Assembly: GCA_051294905.1 (NCBI GenBank)
Contig: CM119384.1
Location: 20,088,001 to 20,152,000 of the forward strand
Origin: Botryllus schlosseri
Lineage: Eukaryota
Reading direction: 5' to 3'
Length of the DNA stretch: 64,000 nt
Shown here: piece after piece, positions 74 through 28,199 of the stretch
Layout: every line of letters begins with the position of its first letter
How positions within the stretch are numbered: position 1 is the stretch's first letter
The notes under the pieces: generated by a model
The model's input: only the letters and a program-made list of their open reading frames with translations
Database searches by the model: none
Told to the model about the DNA's origin: nothing
Made by a program: the position numbers and the translations under genes

Positions 74-177
74 AGATCCATATAGCTGACCCCTTCTGTC
101 CATAGCGAGGTATCGACCCGTCTCGACTCCTCTGATCGTTACAAGTCCGGCTCTTATCGCCACGAATTCCAAAATAG
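74..177 (-). CDS. FGF9/16/20: FGF9/16/20 second coding exon (104 nt)
   Basis: Not in the ORF track. Acceptor TCCTCTTTCAG (ends 178) and donor GTAAGT (73-68). Joined in phase 1 it reads (A)[34 protein letters not shown], against FGF9 [34 protein letters not shown], with the same length and phases as vertebrate exon 2. The third exon lies left of the window. Confidence 0.96.
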
Positions 178-540
178 CTGAAAGAGGAATAAAAGTTTAG
201 TTCGAATCACTCGCAAAATACTATCCGCGGAATTGAGTCGAATGTCAGCTAACAAGAAATACTATATCCGCTCTCTGAGAACGGCGGACTCGGGTGTCAG
301 ATAATTTGAACAATCCTCGAAGCATTTGGTGTGCGATATCTGAGATACATCTTCAAATACCCATTGGTAGAATGCTGTCGTATTGGAAAGGACTGTAACA
401 TAACGCTAAGACTCGGCTATATCAGGCAATCTTCATCGCATTTGACAAAATCTTGAGATTATTACTCGCATTAGAAAAACACTACACGATGGCATTGTCA
501 AACCGAAACGAATCAATACATGCGAAACTTTATATCTTAC

Positions 541-1162
541 CGTAACGGCTGTGATCTTTCAAAGTTCCTTGCACTTTGCCGTTTTTTAATATTTCCAAAT
601 GAAATCCGTTTCGACAGTAAAGCTGCTTTCTCCTCGTAATTCCTTCCAGGTGAGGTGGGATATTTCTCTTAGAAAGATTGTGAACTACTTGGTGTTGTAA
701 CACATCTTTCTTCGTAGTTGTTAGACTTTTGTCGACTGGTGTTTGGTTTGGACTTCGCGAGATATCGATTATTTCCTGAATATCGACGTCCTGGCCGAGT
801 TTTAACTTCTCCCACATTTTAGGGTCTGGCAGGCGGTCGTGAACAACGGGGATTGAGTCAGTGATGGGCTGAGGCACGGATTCGTCAGACAAGGCGTTCT
901 TCTCGATAAGGACGCCGGCCGAATTTTTCAGCCTTCCCGTAGATCTCTTCTTCCTACGGGGCGTAGATAAATTGTCGATTTCCGATATAGGAATCCGTCT
1001 CCCATCCAAAAATGCAGGACTTGTTCGCCCCGTGGTCTCAGCCTGAGAGCCCCGTAGTCTGTTAGCTTGCTTTATGGCAATAGTCATGAGCGCAGCTAGA
1101 GCTCCCGTGGTGGAACCGCTGTTGTCGGAACTGATATCGCCAACTGTAGGTAAATACGGCAT
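541..1162 (-). CDS. FGF9/16/20: FGF9/16/20 first coding exon (long N-terminal extension plus start of FGF core). The exon probably begins at a splice acceptor at 1274/1273.
   Basis: Translation ends ...[37 protein letters not shown], matching vertebrate FGF9/16/20 [37 protein letters not shown]. Phase-1 donor G|GTAAGA at 541/540. First in-frame ATG is at 1162 (the track's start at 1177 is TTG). Upstream acceptor ATTCATTTTTTTCTCCAG ends at 1274. Confidence 0.95.
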
Positions 1163-4100
1163 TGCAGTAATTCCCAAGTCAACTCCGTCGGTAAAAGTGT
1201 CTCTATCCTCCCGCGTCGCAAATAAAATGCAACTGCTACGGTGGACGTTAATCGTTATAAATAATGTGCTTTTCTGGAGAAAAAAATGAATATGATATAA
1301 AGTACCATTCCGACCTATGAAGTTTGTTTCTTGTATTCAAACAAGTCTGATATTCCGATAAGACTGTATTATCGCAACAACAGTACGCCGATGCCGCGAT
1401 CAGTAGCGATGCCGACGCCACGCCACGAATTCGCGCGTATATAATATATAGCTGTCGATGAAATATTTTCAAAGTCCTCACTACACGGCCGATCACTGAC
1501 TATCTCGCAATAACGTTACATGTGTAATAAATAAGTCCTTGATTTTCTTTTCAGCGCGATGTTTCTGCTAATCCGTCTCGGCGGTTTCTCTACTCGTTAC
1601 ATATCTATAATTCACTTTCACATCGATGCAGTTCGCTCCAATAACCGAATAGATCTGGGCGTAATATCCCAAGCCGGCAATTATGCACGGTCGAGATTGC
1701 CTTCATTAATCCAACTCAAAAGGGTTTTCGTCACGCGTCGGATTACGACGAACTCCCGTTGCAATATGGCATTGGCCGGTAACAACCGTCTTCGATGGGG
1801 TCGAATATGATATACTCTCTGCCTACATTTTTCCGCCGCTTATGTATCTGCACTGTGCATCGCCTGGTTGCACCTGAGCGATGATATGACTAATGCGATC
1901 AATCTGCCGTTAATATCTTGAGATTTTCCCATGATAGTGGAAGTACATCAAAATATTACAAGGTATACGAGCAGAAAAAAGAACGCAAAAAACAATAAGG
2001 CGCAGATGTCATATTCACCTGTTTGTGATTTCATATTCACTACGGCGCTTTTATTTACAAATCGATTTTGGCCATAAATACAGTAAATTACCTGTCTTAT
2101 ATTTAACTGAACTTGCGTACTAGCTACGTAAGGAACGAATGCAAAAATATGAGGTAGGCCATATCCCCGTCCGTGGGCGAGAATGATGAGCTTTCTTTGC
2201 GCCGCCAGACTTTAGAAAAAGAAAAAAATCGCAGCGCGAAAAGAAGTGCGAACCAATCTGTTCCGCGCAGATTATAGGAAGAATAGAGAGTCACCGACCT
2301 CGCCGTTAACTCTGTTTGATATCGGATTCATGGTATCGCAGCCGTCGCTATTGGTGTGCCGCAGTGTGTGCGCTGCAGGCAAGTTTATCTCACCTATGTC
2401 TGCGCACCTAATTGAAGTTAATCGGGAGATTTTAATTCCAAATCATTGGAGCAAAATGTATTGATTCTGCGTAATTCGCACCAGCGGCGTAACACACACC
2501 ATAATGCGTTAAATCTCATTCTTTCTGCCGAATTGAATTGCACAAAGATTAACTCCAAAGTATCTGCCAATTGATAAAGAAAATATTTCAAAGTGCGCGA
2601 GGCGCATACACATCGTGTCATCGGTAACATGGAATCGCGTTTATTTGGAGTGAAGTACGAATGAAGTCTGGTGTGAAAGTCATTATTTACACACGTACCG
2701 ATGTGTTTGAACTAGCAACATTACAGAGAGCTTATCGCATCTACGTATCGAAATCCCTGATATTGATTGCGATGGCGCGTGTCTGGGGGTGTTTTGATAT
2801 GCTGTTCTGACTGGTGTCCCGCGAAGATGATAAAACGCTCAGCATGATAGTTGAGAATGAAGTTCGTTTATTCTTCGATAAATCGTACAGTGGCTTTCAT
2901 TCCTGGAGATAATACCATACAGATCTACACCACCAACATATATCATGTCGTGAAATCACAGTGTCATCTGATGGTTTGCTATAAAAGTCATTTTCATGTT
3001 CCATAGCCTAGTGGCATTTTAATCCCAAGAACTAAAAAAACAATCTGGATTCATCATAAAAACAGGTTTCAAGTTCGATAAAGTGCTGTTTAGTGCAAGT
3101 AAAGAATAGCATTGTTGGTGGTGCTCGCGACATACTGAAATATCATATCCGTATACGATATGCATTTCCGATTACTGAAGTCCTTCGCTATCAATTATAG
3201 TATAAACTAAAAATCTTAGAAAAACATCGTAATTTAATAATCCTCGTTTTCCGTAACATTAAGCATGTCACTGGAAATAGTTCTCACGTTTCAATATGTT
3301 GCAGCCGTCCATAATCATTAATCAATGTACTGGCGCGGCAGCTACAATATCGTAGGCCCGGACTGGCGTTTAGCGATACAATATCGAACGACATTTACGC
3401 TTCGCCCGTTATAACGCTAAGTTTATTTCTTAGTGGAGTCAGATAATAAGGTCGTACGCCGGACTATAACAAATATTAGTGAACATTTTCACAGGATCAC
3501 AGCTATATACCCAATATCACCTCTCAAAGAGTGAGAATTTTGATTTTACTGAGGAATCGAATTGCGTGCAGCAGAATCTGCCCCGTCAGGCCGTCACAGC
3601 TATTCGGAATATGTAAGGAACAATGGCATTCCGATATGTTTGTTGGAGCTGCATGATAAGGCTATATTTTGGATTCTCGCGTTTAAATAGTCATGCTTAT
3701 TGCACTACGTCCCTACCGTAGTATACCTACACTGCGAATCCTTGGGAAGAAAATAAAATTATTTACTGGAATTCCGACATAGCGTGGATTGCAAATCGCG
3801 CCATCGACACGTTTTAGTAGCAATCCCACGCTATTGGGTTATATTTGCCATATATCGGTGCACTGCACATAGAACCAACTCCACCCCGCCGGATATATCT
3901 CCGTAAGAATTGGCGCATATTCACCCATTGAAATGTGTGTGGAAGAAAGTGTCGTGTACGTGATTGGGAAATCGGCGAAATACACGATTTACGTTTACAC
4001 TGTAGAGAGCAGGTTTGCCGCCATATAATGTTTCATCAATCGCGTTTTATTGTGATTTTCATAATATGCCCGTAAATGTTACTTCGAAGCTGTGCAAATG

Positions 4101-6410
4101 AACATACTCTTTTGAACGACAGAGAACCACGGTTATACTTATACATGGCATTTCTCACCGAGTCTGTAAAAGAATTCAAGGTGTAAACATTTCTCGCCGT
4201 ATAAGAAATTTGCGACGAATACCATCTATTACCATTCAACTTTTATTAAGTTAGCTGAACTTCACTATTATATTACTCTAAAATAGATCATTGGAGCGTG
4301 AAGAGGTTATCGTCTTATTACCTTCATGTCATAGATGAAAGGTTGTCGTGCCATCCCGATCGCATTCATGTTCATTTGAGGTGATACCTCTGCCATGTCG
4401 TATAAATTGAATATAAATGTTGTAAGCAAAAGCCGATATAAGCTTATATCGGAACAGATGAAACTGGAGAACGGTTCTCAAGCATCAAGATAACCGACCA
4501 ACCGTGTTCGATGGAGTTCCTTGATGAGAGCGCTGTCTTATTTTTCGCGCTAAAAATTATAAATCGGTTATTGATTTGCGTAATATCTCGTAATATTCGC
4601 ATCTTGCACGCGACTTTCGTTCGTTCGCACGACACAAAGGTCCACGTTGCGTGCCTGAAAAATTTACTACACCGGTAAAATTGCACATTTGTGACGAGCT
4701 CAGATGATGCGGGTTGCCTCTGCTGGTGTCAAGTTTCCGATAAATTTCTAATGATATATCTGGTATTTCTGGCGTCGCACGCATAGTTTGATCGAGTAAT
4801 TTATTGTCATATGATAGAGAAAACAATGGCGAATCGAAATATCACGACTTTCCATCGTGTGTCGGAATGTCACGGTTGCTTTACAAGGGCATATACTGAA
4901 TGCGGGCGGGACTTTGGAACGAGCCAATTTCATGTATGTAATTGAGATTATGCTAGTTATTTAACGAGATGGAATCTCGCCAAAGAGGATTATCTCACGT
5001 AATTCAACTAATAGAACGGAAAATACTGATTTCCCAGGGACACTCACCCTAGCCACGATATCAAGGAATTGCTAGAACATTGCTATCGAACATAGGCATG
5101 GCAGAGATTCATCACTTCAACTATCCTAGAACTAAATATACACGCGTATACAATACATAACTGTTATAACAGTCAGAGAATGTGAATACATATGAAGAAA
5201 CCTGCGGATATATTACTCGTGTTTGCAACATCAACGCTTGCATTCAGAGACATCATTGCCAATGGTGACTTGGTGACTTTATGGTGTGCACTATTTAGAT
5301 TTGGAGAATCGTTGATGGCATATAGGCTTAGTTATTATATCGGATCGGACTACAGCTACGATTGTATACCGCAGGGTATAGCGACGATAAAAAGAATCGA
5401 TGGTAAAATGTGAACAAATCAAAGCCTGAGAGCTTTGTAGCCTACGTTGTCCTACAGAAATCGCAGTCTTTTTTGACTAAAAAAGGATCAAAATGTAGCT
5501 ATTTACAGAAGCGAAATCGTCAATGTGAATCCGTGGTATGTATGTCACAGTGCTCAAAGAATAAAATCCAAAATATGTAGTTGCACTGCTATATAACTTG
5601 CTCTATGTGACTTCGGTCATTTTAATATTCATCAAATGTGCATTTTCAAAGTAAGCGTAGGAGCGTTAGAAATTGTTTCTTCAATTTGTCACTTTATTTA
5701 GTGTGGTTTTGTTTGGTTCAGAAGGGCGGCTTAATAACTTTGATTATGTGATGACTGAAAATTGAGTGTCTTCCTGACAATAAATACGTATTATCAACGT
5801 CACATCACCACTAGAACGAAAGGAGCGGAGAAATATGTCAACTTCCATTTCCGCAAACCGCAGGTTTGAGTCACTGTTTAGTGTCTGATATCAGATATCT
5901 GTATTCAATCGTATTTTGCTAATTGCATTGCTTGCGATTAAAGGTGTAGCTAGGATAGAAATCCTATGGTCGCTAATATTCTATACTACGTACATGGTAT
6001 AGATGCTTGACAATGAATAATTATATCAGTATCAGTTTTATTAACAATTTCATCATTTCAAAAACTGCAAAATTGCGATACAATGAAAAGATAGGAAGTA
6101 GTCGAAACGACTTGGAGTAGTCTTTGAAATCAGCCACCCACCTGGGCCTAGGAGATGTAAAGAGGAGGCATGCACACTGAAAGAAAATAAAAGGAAGATA
6201 ATATGAAAGGACCAGCGACAAAATGAGGTGGCATGTGACGCGAGTCGAGATCGATCTGTCAGGTCGTGGTCCGGTTAACTTGAGGGCTGACTAGCATTCA
6301 TTCCACTGAAAAATAAGAATATGAACGTGATGGTAACATTTTGCCATTATCGGCTGTTTTGAATTGCAAGCGATCCAAAGTTTTGAATCCGACCTGAGAC
6401 GCATAGATAG

Positions 6411-9006
6411 CAGTGATGAGCGGATGTTGCTTTTTGAGAATCCGAATCCGTCCGACAGTTTTTGTGTCTGCGGAACTATCCGTCCGACTCCGAAGAATCT
6501 CATCCAACTATCCGACTTTATCCGAAAATCTCGTACAAGAATCCGAAAAATCCTTATCGAATAATGATATCGCAGAATATCAATTGTAGGCTACAGCTGA
6601 GCTTAGATACAGTTCTGCACTAAAAGATCACAAATTGTATCTATGGAATGAACAAAAACAAACAGAACAAAAATTGGAATTTTAATTATAGGAACGTTAA
6701 CGCGAGAAACAACGCTACTAATTTAAAGTAAGTGTGCAAATGAAAGTGGTATTTCGGATCAAAAGAAAATTAAAAATGACAGATTATTAGGCCATGGCCA
6801 TATATAACAATCAGGCATTTAACCATATTACCCAATATCAAGAAGTGATAGTAGCAAGTTGTAACCATGGAATTTTACAATCTCAGATGGTCAATATTGG
6901 ATGCAGATAATCCGCATTTTGCCCACAAATGCTGGAATGTGTGAAGGCCTGTTCAGTAGAAACTTGCTGATGCTTATAATACCTTTGGTCAATCAGTTCA
7001 AAGTTTTGAGCACGACGCTTATAGTCGAGTCACAGAAAATGTCAATAATAGCTCCATCCTGAATGTCCCTCAGTAGCTGTCCAAATTTCCTCTCCAGTGA
7101 CCAATAGCAGGTCAGTAGTTGTCTTGCCGACTTGTATATTGGAAGAGAAGAAACTGATCTCCAACTGTGCTGTATCCTTGGCCTTTCGGATATGATTTGT
7201 AAGGAGCATTGGACCACTTGAAAAGTTGTGGTGTTTCACTTGAACATAGCAATTATTGCATAGAGGCAATGTCCCATAAATCAGGATGCTATCTCTCCAT
7301 ACTTCACTCTTGCTGTGCTATCTCTCAAGACGTCGACTTTCGTCATTGATCCATTATTACGGAGAAACGAAACTCAGACAGCACGAGCTGTTTGACAACA
7401 TTCGAGGTCTTCAAATAATGCAATGTAAACTGTACGGTACGGAGAACGGAGTACACTTCGAGCAGTTGATGGAGCTCCACTCAAGAGAAATGACGCATCC
7501 CTAACGCACTGATCACCACTCCTTGGTGTTGACTTTCAAACTGTTTACATGGTCTCTCGTTTAAATCATATAGAAAAGCACCATAATAACGCCAAATTTT
7601 TTTTCACAATTCTCAAACTGAAATCAAATCTACATGAACAGACCATTGGTTGAAAAAAAAAACTAACAGCTTTTGTTTATATGGCTCAGTGGTTCTAGAT
7701 GATTGATTCCGTCAATCATATTGGAGAAAATATAGCTGCTGAAGGAAGGGAAGTGTAAGCAGGAGTTGAATAGGTTTGGGTTTCGTTGTATCTGTATATA
7801 GGAATTCTGGATTTCATAGCCTTGTTATGTGTTATTAGTTTACCTTAGTAAGGCATGCATGTATCTTGAATGATTTCAAAGAGGACGATAGGCTACTGTA
7901 TAGTCGAGGCATCGTTATAATAATTATCATACATTTTATCTGTGTACATATTTTTTTATATAACTTTCTATATAATTTTCTGACTGCAGATAGTTACTTG
8001 TATATGTTTGTATGCATATTCTTATTTGATTGGTCGGGCTACAAGTGTGTGGGTACGGTAGCTGTTAACTCGACGTGCAAGCTGACTCAAAGTCCAAGTC
8101 CACACTGGCTCACTGGGAATACCTTCTCACAAAATGGAGTTATTACATTGTTGAACGTCATTGGGATATATTCCGTTATGATCATGAACTGCCGGAAGAC
8201 TCATGGTAGCTAAAGATTGTGCCATAGCACAAGCACCGCTGTATAGTGCTGATTGAAAGGGTATCATACAAGTATACAACTACTGTGGTAGCATGAAAAT
8301 CAGTCATGCAACAAAGTACGCAAAGAGGGATTTGTCTTATATTTATCTACAGAAGACTGCCGCAACAACTACTTTGAGGATTCTGGATATTGTATGCCCT
8401 ATTGTGACATTCGTCAGCTATGGGTTCAAAAACTACATGTCAAGGTGGAAAGCAAATGCAGTTCTAGGACCGATGTTGAAACAAAACCTTCAATTTTGTG
8501 AACTTCAGAAACTGCTCTGCGAGAATACTGTACTGATGATAACTATGTCAGGAGAGCTCATGTCTAATCATACCATCTTTTATCAGTTCACATATTATAT
8601 ATCCGTTAGACTGGCAAGTATGGTATACTTGATGTATTTTAGCAAATAAAGTGATAACATGGCTGACCTTATAGTATGGTCTACTCTTGAATGGTAAGAA
8701 TGGTAGTGGCGATAGTTTATTTGTATTTTCTTGGACTCTTGACAGACATTTTTAGACTGCTACCATTCATATCGCAAGGTGTCAGCTGTCTGTATTTGGT
8801 TATTGAATTGATGACTTCTTTCTATGGGCCTGTAATCAAATCTCACATCTGGTTACAACTATCCGGAAATATCCGTATCAAAGTTACAGCTATCCGACAA
8901 TATCCGGAAAAAAATCTGCGATAATATCCGAATCCTATGCGACTGCCAAAAATTTGTCTAATATCCGGTCCGAATGCCATCCGAGTCCGTCCGATGCTCA
9001 TCACTG
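6411..9006. mobile_element. Non-autonomous hAT-type DNA transposon (~2.6 kb) with ATCCG subterminal arrays
   Basis: TIR CAGTGATGAGC at 6411 and GCTCATCACTG ending 9006. Perfect 8-bp TSD ATAGATAG (6403-6410, 9007-9014). Dense ATCCG/ATCCGA repeats at both ends. No intact transposase inside. Confidence 0.85.
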
Positions 9007-9762
9007 ATAGATAGCCTATATTTAGTTTGACATCTCTTGACAATATCCAACTCAAAATTTCGGTAATGCTCCTTTGTTTCTACGCATGCTATTGTAGTGC
9101 GTCCTTACATTGGTGATACCTGTTAACTTGATTCAAGCAAATATCATCTTGTCGAGAAGAAAAATTGCGCACTGATGTATCCAAGAAGACTATTCTCGCA
9201 ATCAAGAGACCAATCTGTATTTATTCTATACCGACTTTTATGGACTAAATTGCGTCACGCAAAATTCACTGATGCGTTATGCTGCGCTTGAGTAATCTTG
9301 TTGCTGAGACCGCTTCAGTGTTCTGTGTTGAACAAATTTATGCTGTTTAGTGTTTTGTTTAGCGTTACTTGTATATGGAATACGTAACTTAGAAGAATGA
9401 CAGGTCAAGATTTATTTGCTAACTATCACAGAGACGAAACGATAACATTATCTTCCGAGTTGAAGCTTGATGAGAATGCGTATACCGCCATATTTACCAT
9501 GCAGTGTCAGTCTGTCAGATCAATCATGGCTAGTCCGTTCATACGTTGGATACCATTCACTGATAGGACGTAGTTGTATAGTTAACTATGAAACATTTCA
9601 AAATTTAACATGCATTGCAAGCCGTGATTGTATTTGCTCTTCACATGGATTACGTGCTGCATTTGAAGTAGAAAATGCATGTAGTTGGTAACTGAATCTC
9701 ACCAGTTCTGTTTGGTGTTTGCATTGCAATATCAGCTTGCGCTTCATTTTGCAGATCTAGTC

Positions 9763-9999
9763 ATGGCTTTCCGTAGAACTTATCATGCATTCAACAATAT
9801 TATTCACGGTCTATGGCCAAAGACTCCTCAATCGAAGAAAGCTATTGCTGCTGGAATATGCACTTTATGCGGAGTTGCTGCAGCCAAAAAGACTATGAGA
9901 AATAGGCAGTCATTCGTTGAATATGGCATTTCCAAAGAGTTACATGCTGCAACTGTTAGTGCCACAGATGCTAGCGTTGAAGAGGAATCGGAACATAAG
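9763..9999 (+). CDS. MICU2/3: MICU2/3 first coding exon (presequence-like N-terminus and hydrophobic segment)
   Basis: Acceptor TTCATTTTGCAG ends at 9754 and the ATG is at 9763. Reads MAFRRTYHAFNNIIHGLWPKTPQSKKAIAAGICTLCGVAAAKKTMRNRQSFVEYGISKELHAATVSATDASVEEESEHK: a basic, acid-free start followed by a hydrophobic stretch. Strong phase-0 donor AAG|GTAAGA at 9999/10000 is compatible with the phase-0 acceptor at 28070. Assignment rests on architecture and phase, as this region is poorly conserved. Confidence 0.7.
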
Positions 10000-11473
10000 G
10001 TAAGAATGTGTATGGTTGGTTGTAAACTCATTTATGCCGAGTCTATGCTGGCTTTTGATCTCGGCGTATGTTGCAATTTCATTGGCTTCACCAGTTTCCA
10101 GTGGTGGGATGCGTTTCTTGAAAATTATCTGTCGTGCATTTATAACAGATTTTATTGACTCTACGTCATTACCAACATATCTTGTTTGTGTTTTCCACAG
10201 ACTTTAATATTTTTTATAATACTTCTTTTCAAACCTTACGTAACTTGTCTCATTCCTGGCCATATTACACACTTCTACTTGCACCTGTTGTGTGGTTTTG
10301 GTCTATCAGAAGCATATTATTATTCCTCAAGTAGGGCAGTAGCGATATGAAAAATTTGCACCTCTGATTGTTATTTACCGTATACCAATACTTGGATGAC
10401 TTTTTCTGATTTTCATCAGCTGTGTATCTCAGTATTTGCTTTTAAATTCACGATTAGTGGATATATTTATGATAATGTGCCAAAATCTATGTGTAAAAGA
10501 ATTAATTGATGTAGGCCTACAAGGCCTACCAACTACATAGGCCTATGAAGAGGAAAAGGCTCTTGTAGAGTACATTGTACATAATAGGCCTACTAGATAT
10601 AATCTTGTCTCATTATTTTTTTGACCTAGCCTATATTTGACCATAAAGATATATTTAGCCTACTTCTCAGTTCAACCATTATTTATTTGGCTGAGCACTG
10701 TTGTCTGGCCGCTGCTGACCGGATGATTTCAATCGCCTCGCTGTGGTCCAGTCCCTAGTTATCATATGTTTTATTCTTATTGATGAATGATTTACTGCGA
10801 TATCAAATAAGCCTGATTTATTGATTGATTAGCATCACTTCTGGTCATAAGGAGCTAGCAAGCCTACTAAGTAGCTTATGAAATAGACGACCTGTGCTTA
10901 CATTGCTTATTCAAGTTTTTTTGTTGCTACCATACTGTCCCTTAATATTTGCTGCATGCAAGGCAGCCTACCAGCCTACTTGGTTTATACTAATTGTGAA
11001 TTTTGTCAAGTAGGGTAGCCTAAAAGTAGTCTATGGTTAAATAACTTTTTTGTGAGTGAATGTGCACTACTATTGGTTGAATAATTTTATCTTGGACCTG
11101 CGACCGTGGAAAGCAATTTTTAAATGACATCAAACGTACCACTGTTGACCATTCTACGTTACTCACTTAGATGTGTTATGTAAAAACCTAGACAGATCTC
11201 ATGAGCTCTTTAGCGCGACCAGCTTTCAAATTTGAAAGTCATGAAACTACATAAAATGCACCCACAATCCAGTTAAATTCATTCTTGTCTTTGAAACTTA
11301 TTGCTGAGTAGAATTCCTTTGCATTTACACCTTCTCTTCTCCATTTCTATTCAAGTAATATTGTTAATTAGTTTCACTATATCTGATGGCCGTCCTGTTT
11401 GCAATTCTATAACACTGCAATTACCATATAATAGATTAGTTCTTTTTTTTTCGGTTTACTTGAGCACACATAG

Positions 11474-12042
11474 CAGGGTTGTAATGACTCGAGTCCGACT
11501 TGAGTCGCAATTTTTGGTGACTCGAGTCATTTTCACAAAATACGGTAAATGACTCGATTCGACTTGAATCAATCTGTGTATTGACTCGAGTCATTGAACT
11601 GAACATGACTCGGACCAAGTCATATGACTGAAAACACGTACGGCCAAGACCGTCATTTCATTGTAATTTCAAAGAATGATAAAGTTACCACACTGTTGAT
11701 ATTTCTTCTATTGATGCTGGTACTTGAAAAGGCGACCAGAAACTGCTAAAAGTTGGGAAATTAGTAGGCCTATATTATGAATGCGAAGTATTCGATATCA
11801 CCGAGCAGAGTTGTAAATAGTGGGTTTAACAAGACTTTAACTCGAAACTGAACAGTGAACTCAATGACTTGGACTCGGACTCGAGTCATAACACTATTAC
11901 TCGGAGACTACCCTCTGCTTGTCCTCTTGAACTCGGACTTGACTCGCTGGTGAATTGAAAATGACTCGACTTGACTTGAGTCATAACTATAAAAATGAGA
12001 TTGACTTGCATCTCGGAACCTGGTGACTTGGTTACAACCCTG
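11474..12042. mobile_element. hAT MITE with GACTCGAGTC/GACTTG arrays
   Basis: TIR CAGGGTTGTAA...TTACAACCCTG. TSD ACACATAG/ACAAATAG (7/8). Related partial copies at 18151-18356 and ~24649-24997. Confidence 0.85.
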
Positions 12043-12718: not shown

Positions 12719-12729
12719 GTCCATACGGA

Positions 12730-17881: not shown

Positions 17882-18497
17882 TAGGGCAAGTTTGTGCAAC
17901 TTTTTTTTACAGCTTCCGGCAGCTTCCTAAATACTCGGAAGCTATATAGTATGGTGTTTTAAGATGTTTGGAGGATTCATGTATTGCAACCTTTTGCAAC
18001 TTTTCTCCATATTTTTCATGCAACTTTTTGTAACTTTTTTGATTTTTATGACACTTTTTGCAACTTTTTTTCGATTTTCCATGCAACTAACTTTTTACTG
18101 GAAATATTTGGCACTTTATGTAAATAGATCGCGTGATTATTTCACTGTCGCAGGGTTGTAACCAAGTCACACTTTTATAGTTTTGACTTGAGTCAAGTCG
18201 AGTCATTTTCAATTCAGCACCGATTCAAGTCATAGTCTAAGTCAGCGGGCAGAGGGTCGAGTCCGAGTCATGGTATTATGACTCTAGTCATTGTCTTGAC
18301 TGCTCAAGTGCTCAGTTTCCAGTTAAGTCTTGTTACACCCACTTTTTATAACCCTGTTTGATGGTATCGAATGGTTCTCATAATTCCAAGGAACTTATCC
18401 ACAAAGGCAACTAAAATATATGCAACTTTTTACTGCAACTTTTGTGAAAAATAAATGCAACTTTCCACGGATTTGACTGCAACAAAAACTTGCCCTA
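17882..18497. mobile_element. TAGGG-ended hAT-type MITE with TGCAACTTTT arrays, carrying a nested GACTC-family fragment
   Basis: TIR TAGGGCAAGTTT at 17882 and AAACTTGCCCTA ending 18497. Many TGCAACTT(T) repeats at both ends. Left flank CTTATAAT, right flank TAAT (TSD apparently partly deleted). Confidence 0.7.
18151..18356. mobile_element. Shortened copy of the GACTC-array hAT MITE
   Basis: CAGGGTTGTAACCAAGTCAC...TTATAACCCTG. Similar to the right part of 11474-12042 in reverse orientation. No TSD recovered. Confidence 0.7.
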
Positions 18498-18741
18498 TAA
18501 TCAGTCGCAGTGATTAGAAAAGCATACCCCATGTAATCTTCATTTAAACAATATTTATTTACAACAAAGCTCCAACTGAACAATAAACCAGTACTGTCGG
18601 TCCAACAGGCATATCTTGTAGCTCAAACGACGCCACATTTCATCATTTTCGCTTAGAAGTGAAATCCTATGCCCCCCTAAATCGCTACGGCAGTGCCGAA
18701 CTGAACCCGGAACAGTTGTAAGAGTGATGACGTCATTGGAC

Positions 18742-19725
18742 TATAGATAACTAACCTACGGATAGATACGCAACACCCGTCGTCACGCTTGCTTGCTCGG
18801 AGGAAATTACTGCTCAACAATCTGAACGCAACGTAATTGCCAATCCCATAGCTGACGACCCGAGCGCTCAAATTAAATAAAGTTGATCTTATTTGAAAGC
18901 TACTGTTGCACTGATTCCGAAAATACACATTAAACTTTCATCATAGCAAAGGAACCAGCCCGAAAGAGCCTTTAAAGTAGGAAAATCGGCATTGTTCTAA
19001 ACCAGTGGTTCCCAACCTTTTTCGCCCCATCGCCCCCTTTTCAAGGTCAACAGCGATCATCGCCCCCCAAATTTTGTGTACCGAAAATTGGGCATACAAA
19101 TATTAATCACCGGCGGGTTGACTAAAAAAAAAAAAGGTCAAATTTTCGGCACAAAGTCTAATTTTACACACTTTTGTAACCAAACTTCCGTGGGTTGACT
19201 AAATAAAAAAATAAAAAAAAATAAAAAAAATCAGCCGCTTTGGCGCGTCATCGCCCCCCTATCGCCCCCTTCGCTATTTTCACCCCCCGTCGCCCCCTTT
19301 GTCCATTTTCGCCCCCCTGTCGCCCCCTTCGTCATTTTCGCCCCCCTGGACCGCCAAATCGTCCCCTGGGGGGCGATATCGCCCACGTTTGGAACCACTG
19401 TTCTAAACAATCGTGGCGACGCACCACAATGACCATAACAACGACCCTTGCGTGGCTGCGATTGTTCAGAACAATGCCGATTGTTCAGACTTTGGGGAGA
19501 TTTTCGAGGCGGTTCCATTGCCCTGATCAGATTCTACTGTATATTTTCGGAATCAGTGCGACAGTAGCTTTCAAATAAGATCAACTTTATTGAATTTAGG
19601 CACGCGGGTCGTTAGCTATGGTATTAGCAATTACGTAGAGTTCAGATTGTTGAGCAGTAATTTCCTCCGAGCAAGCAAGCGTGACGACGGGTGTTGCGTA
19701 TCTATCCGTAGGCTAGTTATCTATA
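18742..19725. mobile_element. Unclassified non-autonomous element with ~185-bp TIRs and a 7-bp TSD, interrupted by a Charlie-like MITE
   Basis: Inverted arms at ~18742-18927 and ~19540-19725, also visible as paired ORFs sharing RLLSSNFLRASKRDDGCCVSIRRLVIY. Termini TATAGATAAC/GTTATCTATA. Direct repeat ATTGGAC at 18735-18741 and 19726-19732. Confidence 0.75.
19003..19400. mobile_element. hAT Charlie/Buster-type MITE with CGCCCCC arrays
   Basis: TIR CAGTGGTTCC(C)AA...TTGGAACCACTG. Perfect TSD TTCTAAAC (18995-19002, 19401-19408). Tandem CGCCCCC units at ~19240-19370. Confidence 0.92.
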
Positions 19726-22076
19726 ATTGGACTGACCGAAAAATGCGTCCAGAGTTGGCTGATACCGATATCTGTACGCACAATGCACAGAAACAGATAT
19801 AGCCCATATATGTCCGCCGAACCCGCATTGCAATAAACCGCCGATTGGTTCGTAATGCGGTTCTGGTTATATATTGGCACTATAACGATGCCGGACGGTG
19901 GGTCCACCTCCTGGGCTCTTGCGTTGCGCACTGAGCATGTAATTTGTAATTTGTTTGAATCATAGCACTACTCCAAGCCATCCTTTCGTTACTGCAGTGA
20001 CTAGTGATAACTTGGAGTCTTGGACCATCTAAGAAAACGAATGGAAGATGTGATTTTCTATCAAATGACGTGTCCTTATGCAATCCGGCTGGTCAGGACA
20101 TTTTAGTCTGCATTGCACTAGGCACTGTCTGCACCCTAACAGAGCGGTTGTACCTACACGAGATCATTTTGATCACCTTTACCAACCTGGGGGACACTTA
20201 CTTTAATCTGCAAGCACTAGGGAACGGAACATTTTCTCTGAGCCTTAAAAACTAAGATCGACCACTATGCACAATGTACATTTAACTGCACATCTAATAT
20301 GTCATTATAAATAACTGCTGCACGAAATGATCTGTGCACCAACGGAGTTTGAAAAGAACGAAATCATTAAAGTTGATTTTGACGCAAAACGATAAGCACA
20401 ATTAAGATATATTTCGAATCTGTGTGACTTTGCCGTTACCTTTCAGATACCCGTTCAAAAATGTGGGGCCTGACCTTTGAAAATTCCATCGTGGTGTTTG
20501 GTCGAATCGCAACAGCGTGATACCAATTGCTCAATTGCAAATGAGTTTAAAAATTTTGGAATGTCAGCAGTACGTAGTTTCGATTTCGAAACCGAAACTC
20601 TCCTACGTACGCCACTATTCTCGCGACGTAGTACCACAACGCTCACGGGCGTGTCGTCACATATCATATATATATGTATGTCGTGTTTCATTCTTGACCT
20701 CCATGGAATCCCTGTGACTGGGTGAGGTTGTGAAGCCAGAGCATTTGAACTGGACACTGAACAGTTCCTGCAAGTTGAATTGTGTCACGTAGTAAGGAAT
20801 GTAAACGCTCTGTAATGCGAGAGGCTTTTGCATGCGTTGAAAGAAACACAGATCGTATCGTGGTCACGCAGCCACGTTAGGTTGTGTAGGAATCGCCGGT
20901 CTTTTCTGCTGGCGCACTAGCTGCTACTTATAGGTTCCGCTAATTCTAATGTGCGGCGTGTCATCCAGGAAAACACTTACTGGGATGCTTTACAGTTTAC
21001 GCTACTTATACTCCGACAACACTGCACAGTGCACACCACCCACAAATTCAACTTCTGGTCGAGCCACGAATTGTTGCGCCTCTGATCAATCTCCGCACGG
21101 CGTCATCCAACGATTTAAGCGCCGCAGATTAGCCGCAATAAGAAACACCCGCTTAATTCATGCGTTTTACTACACTGGCTGAGGAAACAACCCCCATTTT
21201 ATTACACGGCATCGCTGATTATCCTGTCCGCGGCACTGTCTTTTTACCTGATCCACGCTACACGTAACGATGACGCATGGCGCAGTGTTGTCTCCATCAT
21301 ATTTGCGAGGTATAGGCCTGCGGCCGGATAGGCATCATATCGCAGCTTTATCGTTCGGAAGCTGGCAAGGCATGTAGATACGCTGGACTGCTGGCGTTTC
21401 GGTGCTGTTGCATGTGATGAATGCGCTTTTAATGCCGTCTGAAGGCTTAATGGGGCTACGGATTCCATTTGGGATGACTAAAATTTGTACAAGATGTTCC
21501 CGCTGACGCATTGACGGACGTAAAATATTCTTCCCACGTTTATCATGAAAAAATTGCCGCGTGCTCCGTCGGACCGGCGAATTTATCGCGAAATCCTGTA
21601 ATTAGGTAGTTTGAATTGTAGTTTGACGCTTTGGTATTATTTGGTATTATATGACGAATCGTACTGAAATTTGTGGAGCCATCCGCGCGCATCAAGAGAT
21701 ACTATTCTTGACAATAATTGGCATTAACGGAAGTTAACCGATGTCTGATTGCGTACGCGTGCGTTTAATGGGACGACTACACCTTGTACCATCGGAATGT
21801 AGCCCTTTTCTTCCGTATCGTCATATGTCAATATATTTTGTTCCCGCGAGATTCTATTATATATATGTTACGCACGGTACGTATTGATCATTTTATGTCG
21901 GTGACTGCTCCGATAATGCTGATTTATATGGGGACTGTAGCGAGATCCATCCTGTTTTTTGTTACATTTGTGTGCGCGTATGCAAACACCGTTGCCTTAA
22001 CTGTTGGTACGCGGTCAGTGAGTAACTTCTGTATAGCATAGTGTACAGCGTATCCTCCTGAGTCCAGGACAGTGGT

Positions 22077-22590
22077 CTTCAGACACCGGTCCGAGTCTAC
22101 TTTCCGGCCGGTCCGCCAATTACATTTTCAATTTTTTTCTCACTTGAAAAAACATTAGAATTCAGGAATTCAGGAATATTTTTTTGAATCGATTTCAAAG
22201 TTTAGATCGAAATTTTGAATTCTTCCTGACTCTTTTATGATCAGCAATATGTGAGAACTAAAAGGCCTGTTCCGACAAAATTTCATGAATTTCGGCCGCG
22301 CAATTTGAGACATTGGATATACGGTATATATATAAGGCGAAGTTCCATTTCTTTCGCAAGAAACCCTAGAGTCAAAATCGAGCCTGTGCTCTTAGCAGGA
22401 CTAACGTTAATAGAACCACGCGTAACAGGAGTGTTGTGAACAAGACAACAGCTTGTTTTGAGTTGCTTACTTTTGTTGTGTTACATTCTGGGTCGAATTT
22501 TATTTTGAAAAGTACACCGCATCGCAAATTTTATTTTGAAATTTTACCGGCCCGCAAGCTCAAAAGGACGAGAACTGCTAGACCTGTGCA
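22077..22590. mobile_element. Degenerate hAT-like MITE
   Basis: Starts CAGTGGTCTTCAGAC with CCGG-rich subterminal motifs at both ends. TSD and right TIR not resolved. Confidence 0.35.
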
Positions 22591-22699
22591 CTGCGGATGT
22601 ATTACCACTTTTGAAAAGAGAAGTATGAAAACAATCCTTATAGATGGTCGCTGCCAGACTTACAGTAGAAACTACCGATCTTGTTCGCTGACGGTCAAC

Positions 22700-23140
22700 T
22701 AACTACCTTTTTTCCGAGTAGTTCTAGTTCTAGTTGCAAATTTGGAAAACTGAGTAATACTAGTTCTAGATCTAGTTGCGAATTGAAACAAAATTAGTTA
22801 CCGAACAACCGGAAAATCCGTCTTGCCGTTTGGCCTGCATCGTGATACCGGTGTTCTGTTGTGTGGTGTTCTTGCAGCCGTTGATAGGTCAGAGTCATCT
22901 CTACTAACAATGGCGTAGTCAGGGGATGGGTTCTGGGGTCGAAACCCTTACCATTTCATATTCATGCTCTGTTCAGTGTTCGTTCACGTGGAAAGCCGAC
23001 CCGATTCCGATAAAATATTAAAAAAAAACGAATTTCATCGGAATTGAATCTAGCTTGTTGTGTTTTACTTAGTTGCGTATTTTAAATGTTCTTTAGTTCT
23101 ATAAGTTCTATTTTAGTTGCGCTTTTTGAAAATTCAGTAG
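22700..23140. repeat. TAGTT/TAGTTC-rich repeat patches (probable MITE remnant)
   Basis: Clusters of TAGTTCTAGTTCTAGTTGC-like units at ~22700-22800 and ~23060-23140. Confidence 0.4.
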
Positions 23141-24648
23141 CTGGTACTGTACAAGTGTGATCGCTGCACGCTGGCATCACTCCAGGAGCGTAAAGAGCCC
23201 CAAAGCATGAACCCAACAAGCATGCTGCTCTCTCATCTTTTCTCCATATTTCCGCGAATGATCGATCGAATCAGATATATGTAATACGTTTCTGGAGCAG
23301 TAACAAGTTAAGCGGATTGTCCCCGCTGTCACCCCCGCCTAACCTACATCCCACACAGCCGGAATCGCTCGCCTGAGCAGCAAGGTCCTTTGATGCAGGC
23401 ACGGCGAGGCGCGACGCGATAAAATCTACGCACTGTGGGAAACACGGGCGGCCCCCGCTCTCTGGTGAATAGCTCGGAACATGTACCGTAAACGCCAAAT
23501 AGAGTGTGCAATTAGTAGTGCTGAAACTGTTATTGGTTACCAATTATCGATAGTGATTGATTCCTCGGGAAGCTTTGGCTGTTTTCGTTTCGGGCAGCCC
23601 GATCGATATGATAGAAGGGACGCTAATGGCTTAAACCATCCGTTATTATTATTTTTAGTCATTGTTGTCCAGCGCGCACACAACACGCGATATGTTTGAT
23701 TTGTTGGGTCAGAAGGTTGCCGGCTTCTGTGCGCTGCGTTAAAGATTGAATATACTTTGAAGGGGATTTCGCGCGGACTTAACTCGCCTTTCTCCCGTTC
23801 TGCCCGTGTCAGGCCCGAGTATCGTTTTGTCAAATTATTATTTCTCGCAGCGCGGGCCGCCGATGCATCAACTTTACGATGCCGGGTCGAGATACGTTGA
23901 GATCGATGCGCGCAGAATAGATCCCCGTTTTGCCGGCGGTCGGCTTTCTAAAACGCGCGCTCAATTTGTTACGTAAATACGTGTTTATAATTGCGCAATT
24001 ACAAATCGCCTAATACGCCACCGTCACTGGGAATGTGTTAAAATGCTTGCATGATGAGGCTCGCGCTGGCAAATAAACATTCGGGGGTTGTGCTAGAATG
24101 CACACTTGATTGGGAGGTTACCGGATTTGCAACAATGGCGGTGATTACGCAAGGCGTGAAAAGACTTTTGATGGGCGCACTTTCGTTTTAATGTTCCTAA
24201 TCGTATTTATGAATCACGCCACCATCGATAAGTGTCATCAATTATGCGGCGATTAATTTATGAATAATTGCCGAATCGGATTATTTGCGGGGCGTTTGTG
24301 GTGGTTGTGTAGCACAGAGTGCGTGTTGATCGTCAAGCCGCGGGTATCTTTTGTGTAATATGTAGTATTCACTAGGGATTGGAAGAAAAGTGATGAGACT
24401 ACTTTGTAACCAAAATAGGCTCAGCGCCGACGAATGTCGTGGTCCTTGGTTGCGATTGGCATTTATCAAAGCACACAAAAGATTCAGCGCGAAGCGTACG
24501 TTAGTAGAGATGTATTTGTAACCAACAAGTGGCATCGTCCCAAATGAAATCGGTATTGTCGAAAAATACCAAGTTGTCTCTAATTCGGTGTATGAGTCTC
24601 ATTATGATTTGTGACCTCATAAAAGGTAGACCTTAAGACTTTCCAACT

Positions 24649-24997
24649 GGGTTTTAACCAAGTCACAAGGTTCCGAGTCTCGAGTCAATCTCGCTCTTCT
24701 AGTTGTGACTCGCCTCAATTCGAGTCATTTTCAATTCACCACCAAGTCATTGTGTTCACTGTTCAGTTTTGAGTTCAAACAGGTTCAACCCACTTTTTTA
24801 AACTCTGGTCGAGTGATATAGAATGGCTCGCTTCCATAATATCGTAGTTTTAGTAACAGTTCCTGGCCATATTTTCCAAGTATCTGGACTGTTAGACGAA
24901 ATACCAATCATGCGGTGATTTAACTATTCTTCGAAGTTACAACGCAATATATGTCTTGGCCGTTGTAGTCTCGAGTCATTTGACTTGGTTCGCAGCC
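24649..24997. mobile_element. Degenerate copy of the GACTC-array hAT MITE
   Basis: CTGGGTTTTAACCAAGTCACAAGGTTCCGAG...CGAGTCATTTTCAATTCACC matches the reverse complement of the 11474 element's right end. The degenerate other end is near GACTTGGTTCGCAGCCCT. Confidence 0.6.
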
Positions 24998-27900
24998 CTT
25001 CGCGTACAACTCAAGTAAAAGGATATCGCTATTCGGCACTTGTCGCTAGACAAGTAGATTTCAAAGGTATTTTCACCGGACGGCTTGTGTTTCCCCTTGA
25101 TTTTTGAAGATGGCTGTCTTGAAAACATCGTAAATCCGACGTCATATTGCATTGTGAGTGACAGCGGCGAACATGCAGACAGCATTTTGCTCATAAACTA
25201 TGGAAATAATTTACGAAACCACTCTGGTAGCGCAAAAGTGCATGCAAACAACTTTAATGTTGGGAGTATTACCAGTTTGTTACTTTGGGTTAATAGTGGC
25301 TCCACCCGTTACGCGAATTGACTGGTAACAAAACGCCTAATCGCTGTTGATCCAATCACCGTGCCCCGACTTCTTTAAAATCAACAGCGATTTTGCGCTG
25401 TGCAGGTGTGGTAATTATGTCCTATTGAACTGCTGTCTGGTTAGACCCCTACGGCTTACGGAGTATTTTTCATGAAATTAGCAATAGTAATTCTCGAACT
25501 GGTGTACGCTCTTAAATACACAAGGCGCGCCTAAACCGAATCGCGATTTTCCCATCTCGTTTACATTCTGCGTTGCGGGCAATATTGCCAGTCAACAACT
25601 CGGGGCTAATTATGACCTGGGCGTATGAACACATGGGGATTAGTGACAGCCTGTGTGCAGGCAAACGTTGCAAATTTCGTGCGCGATCTGGGTTTACTGC
25701 ATTCCGGACGACGGGGTCGGTTCCAGAACACTGTATAAATTTCAACGGTTATCATAGATATACATCTATTGCCATCTCTCTGCTGGAAAGTTTTGGGTAT
25801 GGTAAGTTATTATCATTAAGACACAATCAATAACGAGGATGTTGTTCGCTAGAGAGCGTCACTTCTCGAACTTTCATGCATATTGCACAGTATGTGTATC
25901 AGACTTATTTAATACTTTGAATTCCGAATCCTGTTCCGGATACTATGCTCAAAACTAAATCCACAATGACTCATATCTATTCCAAAGTCGTGTGGAAATT
26001 GAAGATTATCTAAATAAAGTCCAGCGAAGTAAAAAAATCGGAGATCCAAGTCATATTTAACTATAATCTCCACATCAATTATATCAAGGCTTGCTAAGCA
26101 ACACAAAATCGCATTGACTGCATGTGACTATGAAAGAAGAATGTCAGTTTTCATACCAGTACTAGACGAGGTTGGTCAGCATGTTCTCGCAAAGTACCTG
26201 TTGGGTTGTGGTTCCCGCGCCCCGAATGAGCTGGACTCCTGAACTTGCATATTTGGAATTGTGTTAGATATGCCCAGTGGTCGCACTCACAGACTACCTG
26301 GCCGCCTAAATATTTCGAGCATTTCTCAATATAAGAACTTACGTATGGTGTAATGATGGATGTACCCGAGTGGGTGCGGGTAGTCGGAATTTTCATGGAG
26401 AGGCTCCACGGATTCCATTTCTCAAAAACTGAGATAGTTTCAAAGGAAAGGTGGAGCCTTGCAAGGGTACACTAACCGGTACAGTGTAGATTTCTGGATG
26501 TGGGCAAATGTGATCAACGTTGAAACTGTGCCACGCCGTCTGTGTATTTCCAGCACCGCAGTTTCCTCGATATACTCGCGTGATACTCTCTCACAAATTG
26601 AACGCGTGCGGCGTATTTGCGATGTTTCATTTTCGGTGGTGATGTTATTAATATGGTAACACGATCGCCGTATCATTATGCGTGAGAAATCCGCGATAGC
26701 CGTCGATAACATTGTTATGGACTTATTCGCGATTTTGCTGGAATCATAGAACAGCAATGCCATCTTTCCGCGTGGAGCTTGTCTCGTAGCTGATCGAGTG
26801 TTTGATTTCGCCAATTGCGCATCATCGCTACTATTTTACAGCTGATAATCCATTACGGCCTGGAAACGTTGCGATAAAGCTCGCTTTTGACACACACCTC
26901 CGGTAGTTTTATTGTTATTCGCTCATATTAAGTGACACCCGACACGGCTATCGACCGTTTTTCCTTGTGGATTTTTCACTTTTCGTGAAATCACAATGCC
27001 CACTTTTTGTTAAGTGAAACCTTAGCCAGGCTAAGCATGGGGCCCGAGCCACCGAAGGCGACAGCCGTCACGTCATAGTGAAACTATGATTTATGGCGTC
27101 ACAATCCGAAAATCGTACCTTCGCAAATCTCAGACTTCCCACACGCTTCTCAGTTATTAAACGTCTATAAAACGGTAATGGACAGGATTATCGATGTATT
27201 AACTGGCCGCACCCCTTCGAAATCTTTAATTCCTATATCCGTACGAAAGTTTTAGTGAGATTACGCGAAATACACTGCTAATTACTAGCGGGGTCATAAG
27301 TTTTCGTCCAAAATTTGTCTCGAGAGATTTTCGTAGTCCATGCGACTAGGCGTCTTGTATCAAGTAGGAGTTTCCTTTATCCTCGCGTCTCGCTATATTT
27401 AGCGGGTATTGTGGTGCTTTGTAGTAAGGCAATCTTTAATTTTACCATGCATTCGATTATATCAGACGGGTAAAGCAAGTTTTGAATGTCATTTAACCTC
27501 GCCATGACTGGTATCTAACCTGTTGCAAAGTATCGGTGTGAATTGATCGATCTTCTCAAAAGTTACGAAAGCGTAATTATAGCATGCTACCGGGAAAAAA
27601 TGACGCAACGTTGCCGAAGGTGGTTGAGACCTATCTCCGGAATTTTGGTGCAGTCGGGCTTCTAAAATGCTTCGATCTGAGATGGATATTGATCGAATAC
27701 TCAGCCACCTGTATTCTAGGTACTGCCCAGCTCCTACCCATGATGAAGATAGAAAATTGCGTCAGCCTGATTGTGCGCTGAGCAAAACATCATTGTGATC
27801 GTAGGATTCAAGAGGATTAAACGTTGAACTAACATGTTGTTTCGCGAAATAGCAATCCAACTACCATCATCAAGTATATACCGAGAAATGGTAACGCAAT

Positions 27901-28069
27901 CAAGGTGCGCGCGGAAATATCAACTTTCGTGCGCGTTGCGACCCTAAAACATTGTTTCGTTGTTGTTTCTACACCCATTCAAATGACATTGGGTTATTAT
28001 TGCGTGGGACAATTATGCAATTGTGTAAACTCGCGCCATCAAGCTCTGCCATCTGTAATCTGTTCACAG

Positions 28070-28199
28070 GCTGCACCAGACGTTTATCAACACGCGCGCG
28101 AACGGCGCTTCTACGAATTTGCGTCTCTGAAAATCGAGGGCGAACGATTTATGACTCCGCAAGACTTTCTGGAATCCGTCACCGAGGAAAATCCGAGGC
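28070..28199 (+). CDS. MICU2/3: MICU2/3 second coding exon (130 nt)
   Basis: Acceptor CTGTTCACAG ends 28069 and the phase-1 donor C|GTGAGT is at 28199/28200. Reads AAPDVYQHARERRFYEFASLKIEGERFMTPQDFLESVTEENPR, matching MICU3-type RERRFxxFASxExxGxxxMTPxDFxxxV and the MICU2/3 exon-2 boundary. Confidence 0.92.

Follow-up and report, generated by a model that had tools for sequence, protein, structure and literature searches.

The FGF9/16/20 and MICU genes lying head to head in Botryllus schlosseri are the ascidian copy of an already described microsyntenic pair. In the window (the whole 64,000-nucleotide stretch of contig CM119384.1 that was analysed), a FGF9/16/20 gene on the minus strand and a MICU2/3-type gene on the plus strand diverge from start codons at positions 1162 and 9763, respectively, which are 8,600 nt apart. 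Both genes are real, and their coordinates agree with the preliminary description, which had placed a divergent FGF9/16/20–MICU2/3 pair here with start codons about 8.6 kb apart. The pair itself is not novel, having already been published (PMC3514665; bioRxiv 10.1101/371005), and our additions to it are small: a conserved stretch of some 420 bp within the first MICU intron, the large size of the 5′ introns across species and a conserved U12-type AT-AC intron. The features of the FGF9/16/20 gene and of the spacer are as follows:

1-9, minus strand: first 9 nt of FGF9/16/20 exon 3, with the acceptor TTCAG at bases 14-10
74-177, minus strand: FGF9/16/20 exon 2 (104 nt), bordered by AG and GT; its reading frame fits those of exons 1 and 3
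541-1162, minus strand: coding part of FGF9/16/20 exon 1, with the ATG at 1162 and the donor GTAAGA after 541
1163-9762: intergenic spacer, 8.6 kb between the two start codons

The FGF9/16/20 gene has three coding exons, giving a model of 321 aa, and its last exon leaves the window, with a further 230 nt past the window start up to the stop codon. All three exons matched the Pfam FGF family (PF00167; 30-53 bits, with 36 bits for exon 2), in order and on the same strand, the match in the exon 3 region being located at C14:20087827-20088024. The exon layout is that of the FGF9/16/20 subfamily, three coding exons of which the middle one measures 104 nt, and the reading frames fit. Against PDB sequences, exon 1 scored 53.6 bits with human FGF9 and 46.6 bits with FGF20, the next best FGF reaching 24.7 bits; for the exon-3 peptide, the corresponding values were 65, 63.6 and 42.5 bits. 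Among the 120 best matches listed for the Styela clava orthologue, all those with a family name were FGF9 or FGF20. The exon-1 peptide has its best named match in a S. clava protein (58% identity) and is 58-64% identical to S. clava and related FGFs across the entire exon, with an identical start methionine; the N-terminal extension of about 170 aa is common to other ascidians. Members of the FGF9/16/20 subfamily are secreted by means of an N-terminal signal that is not cleaved. The exon-by-exon comparison thus favours FGF9 and FGF20, and the minus-strand gene retains the FGF9/16/20 identity first assigned to it. On the other side of the spacer, the MICU features are:

9763-9999, plus strand: MICU exon 1, 79 codons, with the ATG at 9763 and then the donor GTAAGA; aligns with the N-terminus of the S. 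clava MICU3-like protein
10000-28069, plus strand: MICU intron 1, 18.1 kb, from an RNA-read junction and the gene model
28070-28199, plus strand: MICU exon 2, 130 nt, with CAG before and GTGAGT after
28200-64000, plus strand: first 35.8 kb of MICU intron 2, which is 38.4 kb in total and ends at window-equivalent position 66578

The MICU2/3-type gene has eleven coding exons, two of them inside the window and the remainder at window-equivalent positions 66579-87887, starting with exon 3 (C14:20154579-20154737). Splicing between the exons at 9763 and 28070 had been anticipated and is seen directly as a junction in RNA reads: in reads and contigs from four runs, position 9999 is joined to 28070, with the last 30 letters of exon 1 preceding 28068, and position 9968 is the only place in the 144 kb examined where this 30-letter string occurs. 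RNA also joins 28199 to an exon 38 kb downstream, the loose end matching the start of exon 3 in 29 of 30 letters. Both junctions, 1-2 and 2-3, appear in a single raw RNA-seq run as well as in contigs from additional runs, and no RNA read runs into exon 2 from anywhere but exon 1. P0005, in which residues 79-121 correspond to exon 2, was considered as a spliced relative but rejected, being a read-through ORF call on genomic DNA and hence no evidence of splicing.

Three exons place the plus-strand gene with the MICU2/3 type, as proposed, and not with MICU1, the scores for MICU3, MICU2 and MICU1 being 36, 33 and 15 bits for exon 2 (PDB), 43, 25 and 13 bits for exon 3, and 68, 65 and below 48 bits for exon 10, which also matched calmodulin EF-hands. 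The best named match of the model is from S. clava (62% identity). Canonical loops are found in its first and last EF-hands (DTDGNERVDKQE and DKDGDGKLSYVE), and the S. clava orthologue matches EF-hand Pfam families; the EF-hand loop pattern had no match on the plus strand of the 64-kb window because all the EF-hand exons lie beyond base 64000. The C-terminal helix carries a cysteine (…FRKCVKQ…) aligned with a cysteine of S. clava; in MICU2/3 proteins, the C-terminal cysteine provides the disulfide link to MICU1. The hallmarks of a U12-type AT-AC intron are the 5′ site /ATATCCTT, the branch site TCCTTRAC close to the 3′ end and AC as the last two bases. Judged by sequence, MICU intron 7, which lies beyond the window, appears to be of this type: it starts with ATATCCTTT, ends with AC and has a branch site, TCCTTGAC, beginning 26 nt before its 3′ end. 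An identical 5′ site follows the corresponding codon in S. clava, Ciona, Clavelina and Branchiostoma belcheri.

The two neighbours might instead be paralogues (of another FGF subfamily, and MICU1 or another EF-hand gene), in which case the resemblance would be misleading and the synteny only apparent. The MICU tree leaves room for this reading, as its internal support is weak and MICU2 sequences are absent from it; the tree places the MICU model among MICU3-like proteins, far from the fragment of a second locus on contig C9. However, the exon scores clearly favour FGF9/20 and MICU3/2, and MICU1 is a separate gene, the C9 paralogue, which matches only MICU1 (71 bits); apart from what is probably a duplicate contig, the genome yielded no MICU-type loci beyond these two. 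Furthermore, the U12-type intron occurs at the identical codon in four other genomes, and named orthologues hold the same positions in five. We therefore regard a misleading resemblance as very improbable. The five genomes, with spacings given as the distance between gene ends, are:

S. clava: divergent FGF-MICU pair, 5.9 kb
Clavelina: divergent FGF-MICU pair, 5.2 kb
Ciona: FGF and MICU3 head to head, 4.3 kb
B. belcheri (lancelet): divergent FGF-MICU pair, 1.5 kb
Brienomyrus (teleost): divergent fgf20a-micu3 pair, 2.3 kb

The gene-order comparison thus recovered the divergent orientation in every one of these species. The presence of the divergent pair in B. belcheri, together with the teleost fgf20a-micu3 pair, bears out the proposal that the linkage is older than the vertebrate genome duplications. 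Its survival in tunicates, also proposed beforehand, is seen in three ascidian orders, where the pair is kept while the flanking genes differ; the best named matches of the B. schlosseri genes are from S. clava. The outer neighbours vary both on the MICU side (ferlin, LAMTOR/CFAP97, U-box and TPR genes) and on the FGF side (JmjC, SPATA2-like and amino-acid transporter genes). No MICU gene was seen within 10 kb of Takifugu fgf20b, an observation that is uninformative on the pair; the fgf20a copy of Brienomyrus does have MICU beside it. The preliminary description had raised the question of whether a ZDHHC2/20 gene comes after MICU. This gene is absent, and ferlin follows instead, as it does in S. 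clava; no DHHC/cysteine-rich-domain motif was found in 184 kb (40 kb upstream and 144 kb downstream of the window start), and there was no match to PF01529 on the examined part of C14.

The pair might have been retained without selection, simply because a short spacer offers few sites for a break between FGF9/16/20 and MICU. The spacers are indeed short (1.5-8.6 kb), and styelids also continue to share ferlin, the next gene along. However, the pair has persisted for more than 500 million years in three subphyla of chordates, and both outer neighbours have changed in every lineage compared. Randomised gene orders are expected to yield about 0.015 conserved pairs per genome (PMC3514665), and the pair is retained in all four of the genomes checked from ascidians, in which gene order rearranges rapidly. 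Retention without selection is therefore quite unlikely in our view.

Irimia et al. (2012) reported fgf20a-efha2 as an ancient conserved pair of a developmental gene and a bystander with distinct H3K27me3 marking, the two genes bearing different chromatin marks in zebrafish, and read the pair in terms of cis-regulatory constraint (PMC3514665). In the older nomenclature used in the literature on the pair, MICU2 is EFHA1 and MICU3 is EFHA2. The vertebrate fgf20a-efha2 (MICU3) and FGF9-EFHA1 (MICU2)-ZDHHC20 blocks (PMC3514665; Forconi et al. 2013, PMC3636272) involve the same families in divergent orientation, with a developmental gene beside a non-developmental one, whereas each gene is present in B. 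schlosseri as one copy, probably of pre-duplication type, with ferlin rather than ZDHHC2/20 adjacent. Madgwick et al. (2019) found that both neighbours of Fgf9/16/20 are retained between Ciona and Phallusia, two distant ascidians, and that the landscape of open chromatin around the gene, upstream and intronic, is conserved between them (bioRxiv 10.1101/371005); work cited there characterises the known early enhancer of Ciona Fgf9/16/20 as an upstream element, which speaks against FGF enhancers located in MICU. In comparison with Ciona, B. schlosseri belongs to another order (closest to Styela) and its MICU gene spans 78 kb, three times the 26.5 kb of Ciona, the extra length coming mostly from the transposon-laden introns 1 and 2.

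Comparison of the locus with that of S. clava by blastn revealed two collinear conserved blocks in MICU intron 1:

21408-21454: short block of 47 bp, conserved and non-coding, with 83% identity to S. clava
23300-23719: conserved non-coding block of about 420 bp

These two blocks and a 43-bp block in intron 4 were the only non-exonic alignments to the S. clava locus. The block at 23300-23719 is single copy in the genome and gave an alignment of 438 columns (65% identity, E 5e-37), with perfect runs of up to about 20 nt. It lies upstream of MICU exon 2, at a distance of about 4.4 kb here and about 4.1 kb in S. clava. The reading of this block as an exon, coding or alternative, was rejected, since the gap lengths in the alignment are not multiples of three and the block had zero depth in a raw RNA-seq run that covers exon 2; a non-coding RNA was also rejected, there being no Rfam match. 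Strings conserved in the two blocks resemble TCF/LEF (CTTTGAT), homeodomain (TAATTA) and Pbx-Hox (TGATTGAT) motifs. The block was not alignable in Ciona and Clavelina, and its age is therefore only that of the family-level split. In the spacer, nothing was alignable to the S. clava spacer, no Rfam match was obtained, and the ORFs at 7866-8213 and 8293-8649 had no Pfam match. Nested genes in the spacer or the introns were likewise rejected, as all ten ORFs considered (107-147 aa) lacked a Pfam match.

In all the species compared, the two 5′ introns of MICU are long: in four ascidians, introns 1 and 2 together account for about 66-76% of the gene, and in the lancelet about 70% of it precedes exon 2. 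Within the window, intron 2 of B. schlosseri contains hAT and Harbinger transposons, with a transposase domain (DDE_Tnp_4) at 50405-51433, and intron size is weak evidence in this genome because much of the intron length is transposon sequence.

With modest confidence, we lean towards the view that the FGF9/16/20-MICU pair is kept as a genomic regulatory block, with FGF enhancers in the 5′ introns of MICU. A developmental signalling gene, FGF9/16/20, would here be tied to an unrelated housekeeping-type bystander transcribed apart from it, MICU2/3, a mitochondrial calcium-uptake regulator. The enhancers of FGF9/16/20 would be located in the large 5′ introns of MICU, and a break between the two genes would sever FGF from its regulators; the best candidate element would be the single-copy block at 23300-23719. 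The Isl-Scaper and Shh-Lmbr1 blocks likewise have an unrelated bystander with long introns beside a developmental regulator, linked over very long times. In both, experiments have demonstrated enhancers within the bystander, whereas the FGF9/16/20-MICU case so far offers a conserved non-coding block as a candidate. The cis-regulatory constraint suggested in the preliminary description matches the published reading of fgf20a-efha2 (PMC3514665) and is consistent with the conserved block and the large 5′ introns, a fit that falls short of proof.

Constraint could also act without FGF enhancers in the MICU introns, if the blocks regulate MICU itself or if the two genes share a chromatin domain or boundary element. 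The conserved block is inside MICU, at distances of 13.5 kb from the start of MICU and 22 kb from that of FGF, and MICU3-type genes have complex alternative splicing, probably with tissue-specific use (at least four isoforms in S. clava). However, 20-50 kb of regulatory introns would not be expected for a calcium-uptake regulator in compact ascidian genomes, and the differing chromatin marks in zebrafish argue against simple co-regulation of FGF and MICU (PMC3514665). We consider constraint of this kind unlikely, and retain the regulatory block with FGF enhancers in MICU as our preferred reading. More tentatively, and with some doubt, the blocks at 21408-21454 and 23300-23719 could themselves be long-range FGF9/16/20 enhancers, forming the sequence-level anchor that locks the pair together in styelid ascidians. 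If so, the locus would provide a small model, testable by electroporation, of how a genomic regulatory block survives despite scrambled gene order.

The FGF9/16/20-MICU pair offers a textbook-like example of a developmental gene tied to a neighbour with which it has no relationship. The intact pair in four ascidian genomes with differing surroundings introduces no new principle, but it adds weight to the idea that selection maintains the linkage. The practical gain lies in exact gene models for B. schlosseri, in two very long introns proven by RNA and in one candidate regulatory element.

The source assembly (G000) comprises 495.5 Mb, and the window lies at C14:20088001-20152000, C14 being the contig that carries it. 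An FGF9/16/20 gene stands there head to head with a MICU2/3-type gene (MICU, mitochondrial calcium uptake protein gene), and the exons of both were placed as follows, in window-equivalent coordinates, which are counted from the window start and extend past both ends; MICU exons 3 to 11 were modelled with the Styela clava protein as guide.

Exons of the FGF9/16/20 and MICU genes
1162 to 541, minus: FGF exon 1, from the ATG, followed by GTAAGA
177-74, minus: FGF exon 2, 104 nt, with AG and GT borders
from base 9, minus: FGF exon 3, ending 230 nt past the window start
9763-9999, plus: MICU exon 1
28070-28199, plus: MICU exon 2
66579-66737, plus: MICU exon 3
71755-71837, plus: MICU exon 4
75830-75880, plus: MICU exon 5
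80819-80919, plus: MICU exon 6
81123-81162, plus: MICU exon 7
81786-81917, plus: MICU exon 8
83121-83229, plus: MICU exon 9
83426-83583, plus: MICU exon 10
87810-87887, plus: MICU exon 11

FGF exon 2 was absent from the ORF lists, as the preliminary description had reported, yet it lies inside the window. The 321-aa FGF product aligned over its full length, from a common start, with a 323-aa S. clava protein. Against solved structures, the scores of FGF exon 1 were 53.6 bits (FGF9), 46.6 bits (FGF20) and 24.7 bits (next FGF); those of exon 3 were 65, 63.6 and 42.5. Among the 120 best matches listed for the S. clava orthologue, all those with a family name were FGF9 or FGF20. The top named relative of the FGF exon-1 peptide was from S. 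clava (58% identical, across an N-terminal part that is poorly conserved), and three further relatives showed 59-64% identity. Since the MICU model was, in turn, 62% identical to an S. clava protein ('calcium uptake protein 3-like'), the host, which had been thought a probable tunicate, is an ascidian closest to Styelidae among named genomes.

The MICU model has 11 exons and encodes 425 aa. The exons past exon 2 lie outside the window and were located by a genome search with a Clavelina MICU3-like protein as the query. Introns 1 and 2 measure 18,070 and 38,379 nt, respectively, so all window sequence past 28199 belongs to intron 2. The assignment to the MICU2/3 type, rather than MICU1, held: bit scores against solved MICU3, MICU2 and MICU1 structures were 36, 33 and 15 for exon 2, 43, 25 and 13 for exon 3, and 68, 65 and below 48 for exon 10, and MICU1 is separate, on contig C9, where the sole match of a second MICU-type locus was MICU1 (71 bits). 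In the tree, from which MICU2 was left out and in which the inner branches were weak, the model fell among MICU3-like proteins, far from the C9 fragment. The exon matches of the MICU1 locus (G000:C9:6680698-6689896) recur as a parallel set on a small contig (G000:C121:21995-27882), probably an uncollapsed haplotype or a recent duplicate.

RNA from four runs, one of raw RNA-seq reads and three of assembled contigs, was aligned to 22800-28700. In all four, the 30-letter string ending MICU exon 1, unique (9968-9997) within the 144 kb that were examined, stands directly before 28068; because an 'AG' is common to the exon 1 end and the acceptor, the junction is 9999|28070. The 9763 and 28070 exons, whose joining in transcripts the preliminary description had made a test of its reading, are therefore spliced together. 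In three of the four runs, the letters past 28199 fit the start of exon 3 (66579) at 29/30 positions. Most reads and contigs matched the assembly at 95-99% identity, short of 99% or more, and carried fixed differences, among them A>G at 28130 and 28191; the RNA data thus derive from a strain, haplotype or cryptic lineage other than the assembled individual.

MICU intron 7 (C14:20169163-20169785; window-equivalent 81163-81785) is a U12-type AT-AC intron, with the 5' site /ATATCCTTT, a terminal AC and a branch site TCCTTGAC beginning 26 nt before the 3' end. An identical 5' site comes after the corresponding codon (…LQTE.LE.E) in S. clava, Ciona, Clavelina and Branchiostoma belcheri, which makes the intron at least chordate-old. 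We found no mention of it in the literature.

We checked conservation of the pair in the DNA around orthologues, and it was divergent in every genome checked, other ascidians, lancelet and teleost alike.

Divergent FGF-MICU pairs (distances between gene ends)
S. clava: 5.9 kb
Clavelina lepadiformis: 5.2 kb
Ciona intestinalis: 4.3 kb
Branchiostoma belcheri: 1.5 kb
Brienomyrus (teleost), fgf20a-micu3: 2.3 kb

The lancelet FGF peptides were clearly FGF9-like, and the neighbour of Brienomyrus fgf20a was 76-89% identical to a named MICU3. The flanking genes vary among the genomes compared. On the MICU side, a ferlin gene (FerI domain; C14:20229927-20230022, plus) lies ~54 kb downstream; its order and orientation are alike in S. 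clava, and an FGF-MICU-ferlin block is therefore common to both. LAMTOR and CFAP97 (Clavelina), a U-box gene (Ciona) and a TPR gene (lancelet) occupy this side elsewhere. On the FGF side, we found an uninterrupted 512-aa JmjC/Cupin_8 hydroxylase-domain ORF (-15457 to -13922, minus), on the FGF strand and ~14 kb past the FGF 3' end; in S. clava this side carries a SPATA2-like gene instead, and in Ciona an amino-acid transporter. The interval from FGF to the JmjC ORF holds a further ORF of 439 aa (-9020 to -7704, minus), which encodes a reverse-transcriptase domain (RVT_1, E 4e-28) and is probably what remains of a retroelement. The suggestion that a ZDHHC2/20 gene might follow MICU was not upheld: this region of C14 gave no PF01529 match, and the 184 kb around the window contained no DHHC motif.

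As estimated from exon matches, introns 1 and 2, nearest FGF, account for ~72% of MICU in this genome; the corresponding shares are ~66% (S. clava), ~73% (Ciona) and ~76% (Clavelina), and the part before exon 2 makes up ~70% of the lancelet gene. Alignment with the S. clava locus (58 kb) recovered the exons and, beyond these, just three collinear non-exonic blocks.

Non-exonic blocks shared with S. clava
21408-21454: 47 bp, MICU intron 1, 83% identity
23300-23719: large block, 438 columns, MICU intron 1, 65% identity, E 5e-37
74355-74397 (window-equivalent): 43 bp, MICU intron 4, same intron of S. clava, 84% identity

All frames around the 43-bp block contain stop codons; a small element with a regulatory or splicing role is therefore more probable than a micro-exon. 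The large block lies ~4.4 kb upstream of MICU exon 2 (~4.1 kb in S. clava). Its perfectly conserved stretches reach ~20 nt, and the gaps between them have lengths not divisible by three; it is single-copy in this genome, has no Rfam match and drew no coverage from the raw RNA-seq run, though this run covers MICU exon 2. On these grounds its best interpretation is a conserved non-coding element, which may act on FGF9/16/20, on MICU or on neither. It could not be aligned with Ciona or Clavelina.

MICU introns 1 and 2 also carry repeat-like and transposon sequence. At 24573-24966 (intron 1), the summed depth of contigs from three runs reaches thousands, and small joints and GAGTCCGAGT-like loose ends are numerous; the pattern resembles that of an abundant repeat, either short tandem or dispersed. 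At 28316-28700, directly past exon 2, contig-run depth is high, in the hundreds, at a place that coincides with a hAT foldback element of an abundant family; raw RNA reads cover the stretch and suggest that the element is transcribed. Intron 2 also holds an uninterrupted 342-aa ORF (50405-51433) whose product has a transposase domain of Harbinger/PIF type (DDE_Tnp_4, E 3e-28).

The large 5' MICU introns and the conserved non-exonic blocks fit a model in which the pair would be held together as a genomic regulatory block, and we infer, with moderate confidence, that this is the most likely explanation of its retention. Ancient conserved gene pairs were surveyed in 17 metazoan genomes by Irimia et al. 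2012 (PMC3514665), who presented fgf20a-efha2 (efha2 being MICU3) as one case in which a developmental gene is paired with a non-developmental partner, and attributed pairs of this kind to cis-regulatory constraint. Forconi et al. 2013 (PMC3636272) described the vertebrate FGF9-EFHA1-ZDHHC20 block (EFHA1 being MICU2) and used ZDHHC2 in FGF20 synteny analysis. Between Ciona and Phallusia, both neighbours were kept by only 2/9 regulators, Fgf9/16/20 and Tolloid, and the landscape of open chromatin is conserved both upstream of the Fgf9/16/20 introns and inside them (Madgwick et al. 2019, bioRxiv 10.1101/371005). The core claim of a conserved FGF-MICU pair, ascidians included, is therefore already published; our results confirm the earlier observation and support its interpretation. 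They extend the pair to a stolidobranch genome, S. clava and Clavelina, and add the loss of the ZDHHC link, a candidate element and the intron architecture of MICU.
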